A stretch of DNA of 48,067 nt from Macrostomum lignano (GCA_002269645.1 NIVC01004376.1:1-48067), one strand, 5' to 3'; shown: positions 1,152 to 48,067, counted from the stretch's first letter. A program made the numbers and translations. Notes: generated by a model not told the origin, from the letters alone.

Positions 1152-1894
1152 ACTTGGTGTATGGTGCACACTCCCTGTGCGCCCAGTGGCTTTGGTGGAC
1201 ATCAAATGACAAAGAAAACACTTGCAGACAGAACAAAAATCCGTGGCTTCCGTTTCCAAACACTAGCGACTCGCTGAAATAGGAAAACTTCATTAATGTC
1301 ACGTGATATCTTGATAACTTGTATAACAATACCTATAATACAGCCGCAGTATCACACACCTATCAAGTGATCGAACCGGGTCATCACTTGTGACCGGGGA
1401 TGAAAAAACTGTTCGGTGACCTTCGATCACGACCACCTGGGCAGGCGATCGAGTCACCGCCACACAGAAATAGTGCCAGAAGTAGGGAGCTTTTAGAGTT
1501 CCTGTGACCACCGTGGCAGCTCCGGATTGTCGAATGACTCGAGCCTCAAAGTTGTTGACGTCAGTGTATCGGAACTGTAGACTGTCTCCAGACGATTGCA
1601 GAACCGGCATTGTGAAGTCATAGCTTTGGTTGAAGTAGCTGTAGAAGCACACTGTGTACTCATTGCCATCCATTTCCAACGCCCCGCTTGCTGGAACTTG
1701 CAAAGTGCTGTTTGCATTACCAAGCAAATATAAGGCACCGTTTGTCTTGAAGGTCGGTCCGCTGGCCCAGCTCACATTGGAGCCGAGGTCGCCATGTCGC
1801 ATGCCCTGTTGAATGTCATTTGCTTGAGTTTCTTGTACCAGCGGCCAGAAGCCAACACGGTACCGATCAAGCTGAACTGTTTGGGACTCGGGGT
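1152..1894 (-). CDS. Gene B exons: LamG / concanavalin-A-like domain
   Basis: VGFWPL..G..GSNVSWASGP..GALYLLGNANSTLQVP..YTVCFY..WHYFCV.. | LVFG..FLFCLQVF..C; exons 1360-1894 and 1152-1273. Confidence 0.8.
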
Positions 1895-46800: not shown

Positions 46801-48067
46801 ACAGAATGGTATTAATTCGTGCAATATTTTTTTACATACATATATATGCGCACTTACTGCATGAGATCAGCGTAACCGATTCTAATCACCGTGTTGTCAT
46901 AGAAGCTCCTTGGCACAAAGAGGTGCCCTCTGCTGGCCCAGGTCATGTTCGCACAATATTGGCGTGCGATTTCTCTGTGCACGGAGGCCTCGTAGTCCGT
47001 GTAGTAGTGCACGCAGCGCCCGTTGTAGTAGTAAAAGTTCCGAGGACATTCTGCATTAGAACGAATGTAAAAATGAGCTCTCGATCTGCAAACTAAACAG
47101 AAACTGCGAATCTATGTCGTACGCAACTCTAAATTTCTTTGCTGAACTTACCATCAGCTTCACGACCGTAAAAGCTAAGACCAACTGCTGAACAGAAGTC
47201 TCCGTTAACTTTCTTAACAACAATCTGTGCTGCCGTGACTGTGCGATTCAGCCAAATGTCCGAGTTGGTGGCCAAAACCGTCTTATTCTAAAAGTTATTC
47301 AGTTCTTCAGTAAAGTCTCGTGTATATTTAGGTTGCTACTTTTTGTGAACATGACAAACAGAGAGAAAACGTACGTAGGACGCTACAACGCTGTTGTTGA
47401 AGTCGAGGAACTCAAACTGCAAAGTTTGGTTTGCTGAGCAACCCGTCGGAGAGAGGCTCACGTTCGACAAGTGGTGAACGTTGTCGAGAACGAAGCGATA
47501 CTCGGATTTCGGTCCGCTTGTCACTTTGGCTTGGCCTGTCAGGGTGACGCCACTCTCCGTCATTCTCGCATGGTTTATGATAGGGCACTCTGAAACAATA
47601 ATTTAGTATTTTTAAGCGCATGTGACGATGAACTTTCTCTGCGTAATAAGCCTTACCTTCTGGAAATCCGAGGAAACCCAGTCTGAAAATGCATAGCGAG
47701 TTGACTTGCTGTGGCTTGAACACCATGTACTTTGCAACAACGGGAGCCTGAAGATCTTGTCGAATCCACTGTTTGTCCTCCTGGTTTCCGAGAAATGTGG
47801 TGTTTCCCGTTTGAGAGCTGTTGACGGCCTGCATTGGAGCATCGTCTGTTTCGCCATAGAACAGCTCGTACGAAACGACGTAATGAGAGCTGCCTCCTGC
47901 AGTCACCACAGCAAACACTCGCTGTGGAATCTCGAAGGTCACTATAAGATAGGACACTTTTGAATGAATTCGAAATCCCGGGTCGATAGTAGACTCCGTC
48001 GTAGCTGACGTCAGTGCCCCAATTTAGACTGATCGAAGTGACCACGTGGTCAGCATTGAATTGGTTT
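31691..48067 (-). CDS. Gene A: multi-exon polycystin-1-like (PKD1/PKD1L/REJ family) receptor; 5' end lies beyond the window; about 4,000 aa in window (hand estimate); carries several frameshifts
   Basis: Ordered family hallmarks across GT-AG exons: PKD (HNYT..GNYTVHVTVWN), REJ (CIHNC..K; NSPPLGGNCSVKPLKGIAMETKFQINCSGW), GPS/TM1 (CQRWEE..RW; TPNLIDF), PLAT (YLIDVYTG..SGT; WIWHDGSG..WFLNRIII), DDHLWMSL..NFSRLQRLGVC..MIANAMWYG, channel (LRQLRI; FWG..YAGGGY; NWIDNYTRTVFVE). Family is clear; exact orthologue is not. Confidence 0.95.
32088..32877 (-). pseudogene. Gene A penultimate exon: distal channel TMs, disrupted after the first ~80 codons
   Basis: Intact RYVG..KSPWN..LQP. Expected motifs are then scattered over all three frames (LNELV; LGTLSQSSG*L; WGKF; LILAET; IEFLL), with a TAA at 32479-32481. 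Confidence 0.7.
32989..35102 (-). CDS. Gene A exons: TM2 to TM6 region and TOP (polycystin) domain
   Basis: Exons 34214-35102, 34031-34136 and 32989-33816 with hydrophobic helices and polycystin signature motifs; one frameshift near 33330. Confidence 0.92.
33831..33953. repeat. 15-bp minisatellite GTGACATAAATGCAA x8, intronic
   Basis: Units start every 15 bp from 33831; the array ends 14 nt from the acceptor at 33817. Confidence 0.97.
35191..35606 (-). CDS. Gene A exons: PLAT/LH2 domain
   Basis: Exons 35439-35606 and 35191-35351: YLIDVYTGANKHSGTESAIYFTLVG..RRLDD | F..GAINHFVM..LGDIKYMWIWHDGSG..DWFLNRIIITD. Confidence 0.93.
35769..37111 (-). CDS. Gene A exon: GAIN/GPS region and first transmembrane helix
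   Basis: Track ORF 35736-37022 extended to the acceptor at 37112; YNFSIVRHSCQRWEE..W..ANC..NLTPNLIDF..AAVVLSTVIALWCLFIPLAVILRRLD. Confidence 0.92.
37115..37862. repeat. (TAAG)n tetranucleotide microsatellite, ~185 units, in gene A intron 37112-37940
   Basis: Directly visible; a few AATT and AGGT variants; it produces the spurious LLTY ORFs. Confidence 0.99.
37941..39308 (-). CDS. Gene A exons: REJ domain, C-terminal part
   Basis: CIHNCDSK..C..C..FRW; YYINVTAYN..FIVNSPPLGGNC; LFYG..FFPVG..IYDSLG; QRTQFINVI..VTLGAQ. Frame disruptions near 39020, 38770 and 38365. Confidence 0.88.
39392..43543 (-). CDS. Gene A very large exon: three ~150-aa Ig/CARDB-like repeats, PKD domains and the start of REJ; frameshift near 40862
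   Basis: Track ORFs 40836-43589 and 39388-40839 overlap in different frames. Acceptor tttcag at 43544, donor gtaagt at 39391. PKD motifs WDV..V.I.Y..G, Y.GVYDVEVTAFN, FDFGD. Confidence 0.9.
43626..43769 (-). CDS. Gene A exon: EB/EGF-like cysteine module
   Basis: CTSDLNCQIVNRSVCLAPDTMYRTRCNCTVGWYLNQGMCKP; six Cys, phase 1-1. Confidence 0.8.
43865..44473 (-). CDS. Gene A exon: fibrinogen C-terminal (FReD) domain
   Basis: WIVIYK..FNASWSMNRSYEDYRRGF..FWIGNE..YRLRIDMWD..YVECDRFWV..FSTFD..CA..GSGWWF..C; textbook FReD motifs. Confidence 0.93.
44557..45819 (-). CDS. Gene A exons: F5/8 type C domain
   Basis: Three exons (45681-45819, 44794-44958, 44557-44707) join in frame: GFWSGDWVT|ISFNQTFLFTAVAASG..FILEYS..|..KPFYTNKLKV..MKFDVFGCP. 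Confidence 0.85.
45921..46202 (-). CDS. Gene A exon: CUB-like module (divergent)
   Basis: QCDDMLYNVYF..PW..YC..CGTMEMI..ISRMNSLSVGFET..GSFVIEQIC; phase 1-1 exon with beta-strand pattern and spacing reminiscent of CUB. Confidence 0.4.
46292..47050 (-). CDS. Gene A exons: C-type lectin domain
   Basis: ECPRNFYYYNGRCVHY..ARQYCANMTWASRGHLFVPRS / VHIGVIRNASGVWV..WKNWRYDEP..TC..W..SC..FVVCE. The internal acceptor position is uncertain. Confidence 0.9.
47152..48067 (-). CDS. Gene A exons: F5/8 type C (discoidin) domain followed by a short F5/8-like domain
   Basis: YLIVTFEIPQRVFAVVTAG..YVVSYELFY..LQAPVVAKYMVFKPQ..FRLGFLGFP (exon ends 47657), then exons 47375-47589 and 47152-47281 ending VGLSFYG. Reading frame near 47960-48040 is ambiguous. 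Confidence 0.85.

Follow-up and report, generated by a model that had tools for sequence, protein, structure and literature searches.

Do two adjacent stretches of coding DNA in the flatworm Macrostomum lignano, one polycystin-1-like and the other built of repeated lectin-type cassettes, belong to two different genes or to one kind of gene? The question is raised by a eukaryotic DNA stretch of 48,067 bases (GCA_002269645.1 NIVC01004376.1:1-48067), henceforth referred to as the window, in which nearly all coding sequence lies on the minus strand. Read on that strand, a polycystin-1-like part (gene A, 48067 to 31691) is followed by a spacer and by a lectin-cassette part (gene B, 27953 to 1). An earlier reading made from the sequence alone (the sequence-only reading) had taken A and B to be different neighbouring genes that share one ectodomain cassette. 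The present analysis indicates that the window is probably the junction of two head-to-tail copies of one giant polycystin-1-like gene, with gene A as the 3' part of copy 1 and gene B as the 5' part of copy 2. On this reading, the shared cassette is an internal repeat of a single gene and not the paralogous ectodomains of two genes.

This explanation is carried by the domain content, the gene boundaries, the collinear repeats and the continuity of the gene B tail with a gene-A-type head, all of which were observed. Copy 1 would contribute the end of cassette 4, fibrinogen-C, EGF-like, PKD, REJ and GPS-like regions, the first transmembrane segment (TM1), PLAT, TM2-TM6, the polycystin domain and TM7-TM11. 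Copy 2 would contribute the signal peptide, a first C-type lectin-like domain (CTLD1), three full cassettes and the first half of cassette 4. The complete gene is estimated to encode ~8,700 aa in >95 coding exons, with a repeat unit of ~49-50 kb.

Continuity of gene B into a gene-A-type head

Coding sequence of gene B reaches position 1 and crosses the left edge of the window, with protein models mapping to position 1; the coding limit of 1152 set by the sequence-only reading was too early. No stop codon or terminal exon of gene B is present in the window. A search with the gene B tail retrieved M. lignano protein models P0008-P0010 and their cluster-mates P0012 and P0014-P0016. All seven match the gene B exons exactly from 3638 to 1 and continue with ~217-221 residues that are missing from the window, consisting of a kringle-like piece and a complete F5/8C domain. 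Six of the seven then match the right end of the window exactly at 48066-47856 (for P0008-P0010, the exact matches were recorded as 48066-47977 and 47975-47856), the seventh, P0012, stopping within the missing stretch.

The same junction was found in a diverged paralogue with 40-67% amino acid identity, locus L001 (GCA_002269645.1 NIVC01001449.1:84865-107112, part 15-21585). There, ~11 kb of continuous DNA leads from the end of cassette 3 through CTLD4 and a complete cassette 4 to CTLD5, and the gaps are intron-sized only, with no space for an intergenic region or a gene body. Because the bridging models run past position 1 and the window holds no terminal exon, gene B is concluded to continue into a gene-A-type head. 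The gene A head is in turn assigned to the end of a fourth cassette of the same gene type, on the basis of the bridging models and the L001 junction. These two lines of evidence displace the proposal of two different neighbouring genes with a shared cassette. For gene B itself the sequence-only reading had offered two options, of which a second receptor with its REJ/TM part to the left of the window is favoured, while a secreted partner or decoy gained no support.

Annotation of L001 in this region consists of a 319-aa 'hypothetical protein' (PAA67840.1) only. A retrotransposon open reading frame (RVT_1/RNaseH/integrase) lies between cassette-3 exons of the locus, at L001 4268-5686.

Gene models in the window

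Gene models were built with a self-trained, splice-aware finder that combined a 3-periodic Markov coding score with GT/AG position weight matrices and joined exons by dynamic programming over phases. Once trained in this way, its matrices described donors as GTRAGT and acceptors as TTnCAG, and 93 minus-strand exons were predicted in the window. Most finder exons are backed by protein models P0002 and P0008-P0016 where these overlap. P0002 (UniProt A0A1I8HYH1), a 606-aa M. lignano 'PKD_channel domain-containing protein', is 100% identical to window 33814-32634 and 31891-31694, a match that identifies the window as M. lignano DNA. Five further M. lignano PLAT/GPS-domain paralogues show 40-51% identity to the conserved C-terminal part.

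A fusion of A and B through a 3.8-kb 'intron' in the first finder output was rejected as a finder error. Two predicted introns, 40840-40744 and 33467-33377, were likewise rejected as places where the finder had side-stepped frameshifts, and were mended using the PKD domain and P0002. Pfam cut-offs were 22.6 bits for Lectin_C, 28.2 for F5_F8_type_C, 22 for Fibrinogen_C and 34.3 for Kringle. An AlphaFold2 prediction of P0008 made without an alignment had a mean predicted local distance difference test score (pLDDT) of 32 and gave no usable fold.

Gene A, the probable 3' part of copy 1

The features of gene A, in the order of transcription, are as follows.

47657-48067, minus strand: C-terminal two thirds of the last F5/8C (discoidin) domain of cassette 4; Pfam F5_F8_type_C 20-23 bits
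47152-47589, minus strand: unclassified ~105-aa module, exons 47589-47375 and 47287-47152; aligns with the module of cassettes 1-3
46292-47050, minus strand: CTLD5, exons 47050-46858 and 46494-46292; Lectin_C 18.1 bits, under the cut-off; aligns with CTLD1-4
44557-46202, minus strand: four exons (~250 aa) of the gene model between CTLD5 and the fibrinogen domain; no Pfam match in these exons
44473-43865, minus strand: fibrinogen C-terminal globular domain; Pfam Fibrinogen_C 84 bits, E 1e-23, over the cut-off
43769-43626, minus strand: EGF-like Cys-rich exon; cysteine pattern and weak EB/BRINP match
39455-43543, minus strand: giant 4.1-kb exon with PKD/Ig-like repeats and the start of REJ; PKD 51.9 bits once the frame is mended, REJ 54-60 bits
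35769-39308, minus strand: rest of REJ, GPS-like region and TM1 in 7 exons; REJ 73 bits, TM1 by hydropathy
34031-35606, minus strand: PLAT and TM2-TM5; PLAT 35606-35191, Pfam 51.9 bits, directly after TM1; TM segments by hydropathy
32989-33816, minus strand: TM6 and polycystin (TOP) domain; Polycystin_dom 77-98 bits
32158-32877, minus strand: TRP-like channel part, TM7-TM11; intact to 32634, PKD_channel 24.9 bits in the window
31691-31897, minus strand: last exon of copy 1; P0002 residues 541-606 match exactly 31891-31694

The exon with the gene A F5/8C domain crosses the right window edge, and at the other end copy 1 finishes with a TAA stop (31693-31691) and an AATAAA signal at 31626. P0002 itself scores 107.8 bits for PKD_channel and 98 bits for Polycystin_dom. 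A composite of window exons and P0002 contains 11 hydrophobic segments by hydropathy, with PLAT following the first. One or two Pfam-recognisable PKD repeats are present within ~1,360 aa of the gene A ectodomain. No Pfam GPS match was obtained in the 300 aa before TM1; a stretch in this region (CQRWEEAFNRW...VFRSNLFGSLGV) resembles GPS without the C-x-C-HLT core and has a degenerate look. Paralogues P0003-P0007 align to 37112-35178, and P0007 carries the UniProt name 'GPS domain-containing'. With REJ, PLAT, 11 TM, a polycystin domain, a PKD_channel region and PKD repeats, gene A is a member of the polycystin-1/REJ family, as the sequence-only reading had recognised.

Two side observations concern this gene. 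Tandem repeat finding showed a (AAGT)187 microsatellite of 749 bp at 37115-37863, in the intron directly upstream of exon 37111-35769. In addition, 52% identity over 515 aa links the intron-free PKD-repeat exon (window 43520-41976, minus strand) to MEE4247217.1, 'MAG: hypothetical protein [Kangiellaceae bacterium]', whose contig measures 4.9 kb; this DNA appears to be eukaryotic, of flatworm type, and to have been binned by mistake with a bacterial metagenome-assembled genome.

Spacer and gene B, the probable 5' part of copy 2

The spacer and gene B, in the same order, comprise the following features.

27954-31690, no strand: 3.7-kb intergenic spacer between copy 1 and copy 2, of low GC; from composition, coding-potential scan and tandem repeats
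27875-27953, minus strand: gene B exon 1, ATG and signal peptide MLRATFLLLFTCLLLLAVVLESQAKY; donor TAC|GTAAGT, phase 1; from start-codon and hydrophobicity scan
26465-26857, minus strand: CTLD1, one exon; Lectin_C 27.8 bits
17028-26387, minus strand: cassette 1, ~1,200 aa, ending in F5/8C (20563-19810), unclassified module (18420-17921) and CTLD2 (17693-17028, Lectin_C 34.4 bits)
10138-16957, minus strand: cassette 2, ~1,200 aa, ending in F5/8C (12501-11134), unclassified module (11069-~10660) and CTLD3 (~10655-10138, Lectin_C 18.3 bits)
3150-10026, minus strand: cassette 3, ~1,300 aa, ending in F5/8C (5091-4364), unclassified module (4256-3832) and CTLD4 (3694-~3150, Lectin_C 26.3 bits)
1-3150, minus strand: first half of cassette 4, with a NedA/F-type-lectin-like galactose-binding domain (~3150-2520), a ConA/LamG-like domain (2093-1152) and exons within 332-1

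Exon 1 joins CTLD1 (26857) in frame, and stop codons lie upstream of its ATG. An alternative signal-peptide exon at 28680-28558 was rejected, having no ATG and sitting in a 51-bp tandem repeat. This repeat is present three times in the spacer (28662-28816). The cassette 3 exons are backed by models P0011-P0013, and the first half of cassette 4 scores 24-26 bits for F5_F8_type_C_2 and 17-19 bits for Laminin_G_3.

Two spacer segments, 29634-29768 and 28152-28259 (minus strand), are alike in translation (...REGWIAHI.LP...) and are probably copies of a small repeated element. Other tandem repeats are a 15-bp unit in eight copies, in an intron at 33831-33953, and a 20-bp unit in three copies at 6825-6884.

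Structure of the repeated cassette

The four cassettes, of ~1,250 aa each, were mutually collinear in the cassette alignment. Their rough order is a Cys-rich/kringle-like part, a NedA/F-type-lectin-like galactose-binding domain, a ConA/LamG-like region, two to three discoidin-type domains, the unclassified module of ~110 aa and a CTLD. A kringle is added in cassettes 3 and 4, a true one in cassette 3 and a kringle-like stretch in cassette 4. In cassette 3 the kringle exon (6255-5962) scores 52.7 bits, over the cut-off, and in cassette 4 the kringle-like stretch sits in the P0008-P0016 residues missing from the window. No kringle was found at the corresponding place in cassettes 1-2, a distribution that suggests a gain after the cassette duplications.

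The first galactose-binding-type domain is NedA-like (F5_F8_type_C_2, 24-26 bits), proteins of that repeat match it too, and its profile gave a weak PDB match to the eel fucolectin 1K12 (E 0.026). A Lingula protein with four LamG_3 repeats matches the ConA/LamG-like region of cassette 4; for the counterpart of this region in cassettes 1-3 the PDB profile search returned nothing credible. Cassettes 1-3 each contain a discoidin-start-like piece of ~40 aa (GC.EPLL..G...) at 24432-24304, 16575-16453 and 9678-9556. Some 450 residues downstream of these, 21978-21675, 13972-13584 and 7286-6647 match the C-terminal half of discoidin alone (E 1e-3). Such pieces may represent one domain with others inserted in a loop, or two degenerate domains; when the N-terminal piece and the distant C-terminal half were tested together as a nested discoidin, the match lay in the C-terminal half only.

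Each complete gene B cassette ends in F5/8C, module and CTLD, and the gene A head has the same order, as the sequence-only reading had proposed; exon sizes match too. In the gene A head, the F5/8C exon ends at 47657, the module is encoded by 215 + 136 nt and the CTLD by 193 + 203 nt. The corresponding exons measure 215 + 136 nt (module) and 172 + 209 nt (CTLD) at the end of cassette 1; 200 nt, a 302-nt fused exon and 212 nt at the end of cassette 2; and 197 + 133 nt followed by 211 nt and the first part of a 473-nt exon at the end of cassette 3. Collinear alignments of 313-331 aa link the gene A head to the end of cassette 3 at E 2e-19 and to that of cassette 2 at E 1.5e-13, and the homology claimed for the modules of the two genes is borne out. 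Among unrelated lectin-repeat proteins, the best ones matched the gene A head over a single domain each, at E 3e-6 or weaker; the head thus resembles the cassette ends far more than chance would give.

The terminal F5/8C is a true discoidin domain, as had been claimed. Single copies reach 17-26 bits against Pfam, under the 28.2 cut-off, and a profile of the four terminal copies matched factor V C1/C2, neuropilin b1/b2 and lactadherin in the PDB (E 9e-14). The label 'short F5/8-like' for the module that follows did not hold. The module showed no similarity to the F5/8C profile (hhalign probability 0.1%), no Pfam match and nothing credible in the PDB profile search, and it is treated here as unclassified.

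All five CTLD strings quoted in the sequence-only reading were recovered in the minus-strand translation, namely TWASRGHLFVPRS (47050-46858), GKSGTLFAPRS (26857-26465), YWNGKNGTLFMPKS (17693-17522), RWAGQRGTLFMPKD (10787-10486) and HWNGSAHLASPKT (3694-3484). As a shared local signature they hold in part: the strings are present, and a portion of the signature is the generic CTLD helix-1 motif. The phase-2 intron reported for the gene A CTLD and for gene B CTLDs 2-4 was also found, with canonical GT..AG borders at a homologous position in each of CTLD2-5; CTLD1 lacks it. One protein model confirms this intron for CTLD4, and L001 retains it.

Lectin_C scores of CTLD1-5 were 27.8, 34.4, 18.3, 26.3 and 18.1 bits, respectively, so that three of the five exceed 22.6, and all five align with one another. 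Pairwise CTLD identity is 18-39%, and the gene A CTLD is 23-31% identical to the gene B CTLDs, inside the B-to-B range. On account of these two values, the cassettes are regarded as old intragenic repeats, with identities of 17-39%.

Models P0008, P0009, P0010, P0015 and P0016 differ from one another by whole exons (2744-2520, 2442-2176, 1273-1152 and 332-102) and by a few substitutions. Alternatively spliced cassette-4 exons, gene copies that are nearly identical, or noise in the annotation could account for these differences.

Frame disruptions and alternative explanations

Single-base frame breaks are present at ~47976, ~40863 (an AAA run) and ~33329, all in 3-nt homopolymer runs. When the break at ~40863 was mended, a PKD domain of 51.9 bits was obtained across the junction, and P0002 matches exactly on both sides of 33329. 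At least four breaks fall within 332-1, in the gene B tail. In protein-to-DNA alignment, a 480-nt patch at 32636-32158 (TM9-TM11) contained at least 15 frame breaks relative to P0002, with 100% identity on both flanks. The breaks are most likely indels of a long-read assembly, because the isolated ones lie in 3-nt homopolymer runs and others are clustered at the window ends. The published assemblies of M. lignano derive from PacBio data and contain much redundancy (PMC5730564), and the size and error pattern of the window fit a contig of this kind.

Were the breaks real, gene A of the window would be a pseudogene or a decaying partial duplicate. The pore-forming segment at 32636-32158 lends some weight to this, since its 15 or more breaks are accompanied by substitutions and small deletions, and the breaks at ~47976, ~40863 and ~33329 would add to the damage. 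Yet, over 357 and 66 residues, the two flanks of the patch are 100% identical to an intact model, a pattern unlike neutral decay; short homopolymer runs hold the isolated breaks, and others cluster towards the window ends, the places of poorest consensus quality; and the same kind of breaks recurs in the gene B tail (332-1). Real decay is accordingly considered rather unlikely.

Another explanation is that there is a single gene copy and no tandem array, the head-to-tail junction being an assembly artefact (from chimerism of the contig, or from collapse or expansion of a repeat) that presents the gene in circularly permuted form. The dense indel-type errors, notably at both window ends and in 32636-32158, would fit such an artefact, as would the redundancy and difficulty of M. 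lignano assemblies and the almost perfect match of the bridging models to both ends of the window. Against it, the junction has the features of a real gene end and gene start: copy 1 closes with a stop and AATAAA, the 3.7-kb spacer is AT-richer, and copy 2 opens with an ATG, a signal peptide and a strong donor. The slightly different variants P0008, P0009, P0010 and P0012, as expected of near-identical copies, also speak against it. We consider this explanation unlikely.

Highly improbable is a pair of distinct neighbours, in which a polycystin-1-like receptor (A) and a separate secreted lectin-cassette partner or decoy (B) would be paralogous in the shared cassette only: gene B does start with an ATG and a signal peptide of its own, gene A does finish with a separate stop and poly(A) signal before gene B begins, and no gene B TM or REJ exon was seen in the window, but gene B codes to position 1 without a stop or terminal exon, seven models carry its tail past that position and six of them reach gene A head sequence, L001 shows this junction uninterrupted on one piece of DNA, and the gene A head is cut mid-domain at the window edge, so that gene A must extend upstream.

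The reading of two head-to-tail copies of one gene is itself weakened by several points. No single sequence runs from the gene B cassettes to the REJ/TM body; the link consists of ~70 identical residues at the right edge and of a paralogue followed only to CTLD5, and is best described as strong but indirect. For cassettes 1-2 and for much of gene A, the sole source of exons is the self-trained finder, which made demonstrable errors (the two false introns and the false A-B fusion described above). The tandem arrangement could in part be assembly redundancy or a chimeric contig, and the badly disrupted 32636-32158 could mean that copy 1 of the window is a decayed partial duplicate. The GPS of gene A, undetected by Pfam, looks non-canonical. 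Alignment inspection found EPN/QPD and WND absent at the expected positions in all five CTLDs; the scores and alignments support a CTLD fold and do not support lectin activity, and classical lectin activity should not be assumed. Finally, the functional mechanism set out below is drawn by analogy with polycystin-1 (PC1) and sea-urchin REJ proteins.

Functional implications

What polycystin-1-type ectodomains sense is, to our knowledge, still unsettled, and apart from the sea-urchin REJ proteins few members of this type hint clearly at an ectodomain ligand. The ectodomain encoded by the giant M. lignano gene has ~7,000 extracellular residues with five CTLDs, ~16 discoidin/galactose-binding domains, kringles, a ConA/LamG-like domain and fibrinogen-C. 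It would be made almost wholly of folds of carbohydrate-binding type.

By analogy with the polycystin-1/REJ family, the protein would act, in the membrane of cilia or sperm, as an 11-TM receptor-like subunit pairing with polycystin-2-type channel subunits. The ~7,000-residue ectodomain may bind glycans or matrix, or may bear mechanical load, and its signal would gate or tune Ca2+ entry in ciliated sensory cells or sperm. Ciliated sensory cells are suggested because planarian pkd1L is expressed in ciliated sensory neurons (PMC11448475). A glycan-binding ectodomain coupled to a polycystin channel would be a directly testable idea in M. lignano, in which transgenesis exists (PMC5730564).

A bolder proposal would hold that the locus is a tandem array of near-identical ~49-kb genes encoding the largest known polycystin-1-type receptor, with an ectodomain that forms a modular glycan-recognition array on a carbohydrate-gated polycystin channel. 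Diversification would have occurred by cassette-level exon gain (the kringle, cassettes 3-4) and by alternative cassette-4 exons (P0008, P0009, P0010 and P0016 differ). This proposal is quite improbable as a whole. If true, a transgenesis-ready flatworm would use a carbohydrate-gated polycystin channel to sense chemicals, to tell self from non-self or to recognise gametes.

Two consequences follow for existing records. The gene shows that complex PC1-like ectodomains also occur outside the chordates, which planarian surveys would not lead one to expect (PMC11448475). The current M. lignano annotation splits the gene into many fragments with unrelated automatic names, which should be merged. 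Names such as 'C-type lectin domain-containing' and 'PKD_channel domain-containing' occur among P0011, P0013, P0012 and P0002. The entries named 'REJ domain-containing' and 'Lectin_legB domain-containing' are two near-identical 165-aa pieces of cassette 3, where Pfam scans support neither name.

Comparison with known systems

The flatworm gene resembles human polycystin-1 (PKD1) in having a large ectodomain with CTLD and PKD repeats followed by REJ, a GPS or GPS-like region, TM1, PLAT and 11 TM. Human PKD1 has 4,303 aa, and its last six TM are related to polycystin-2 channels (PMC1934368, PMC11448475). Unlike human PKD1, the flatworm gene has no detected LRR, WSC or LDL-A, and its ectodomain is about twice as long, with four ~1,250-aa cassettes, five CTLDs, discoidin/galactose-binding domains, kringles, a ConA/LamG-like domain and fibrinogen-C. 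Vertebrate PKD1L2 and PKD1L3 share the combination of CTLD, REJ, PLAT, 11 TM and a channel-like C-terminal part with a polycystin domain. Their CTLD is N-terminal, and they too have 11 TM. They differ in having one CTLD, an ectodomain of ~1,000 aa or less before REJ and no cassette repeats.

Sea urchin SpREJ1-10 are invertebrate members of the PKD1 family that carry variable, lectin-bearing ectodomains on a REJ-GPS-PLAT-TM chassis. A CTLD is present in SpREJ1-3, together with SUEL lectin, EGF, WSC and PKD domains across the SpREJ proteins, and the CTLDs have been implicated in sperm glycan recognition; a CTLD is also found in hPKD1 and hPKD1L2/3 (PMC1934368). The SpREJ proteins measure 1,450-3,716 aa, and all of their genes were reported as single-copy (PMC1934368). 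Unlike in the flatworm gene, no repeated super-cassette is described for them, and discoidin, kringle and fibrinogen have no mention in PMC1934368.

Within the same phylum, the Schmidtea mediterranea pkd1L family has the same REJ/PLAT/polycystin-domain chassis; mechanosensory and vibration behaviour depends on planarian pkd1L, which is active in ciliated sensory neurons (PMC11448475). In that work, the PC1 ectodomain N-terminal to REJ was not found in other human or planarian PKD proteins, PC1 was the largest, and a complex ectodomain was described as chordate-only (PMC11448475). At ~2x the size of PC1, the flatworm gene described here also has an ectodomain of greater complexity.

Discoidin, LamG, fibrinogen-like and EGF modules are combined in one ectodomain in CASPR, and the flatworm gene is like the CASPR/neurexin-IV and neuropilin types in this respect. 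The closest solved relatives of its terminal F5/8C are the discoidin domains of factor V, neuropilin and CASPR2. Unlike the flatworm gene, CASPR and neuropilin are single-pass proteins without REJ/PLAT/channel, CTLD, kringle or a ~1,250-aa super-repeat, so that the likeness is one of parts and not of membership.

A HMMER search with P0008 over 1.84 billion representative proteins gave 27 matches at E 1e-3 or better. Close matches consisted of P0018, a paralogue from M. lignano, and the metagenome fragments P0019-P0021. Those distant, named matches that were scanned with Pfam (crinoid, Lingula, Owenia, amphioxus) were repeats of one or two domain types. No equivalent architecture was found among these proteins or in the literature, in agreement with the sequence-only reading, which knew of no described family of this kind. 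The PKD1-family literature that was found has no mention of discoidin, kringle or fibrinogen modules or of a ~1,250-aa super-repeat, and literature searches on Macrostomum polycystin, on polycystin with discoidin and on the paralogue gene returned nothing relevant. Since the search of 1.84 billion proteins found no equivalent, the architecture appears to be lineage-specific. The M. lignano gene is an unusually large version of a known receptor family, and not a new kind of system.

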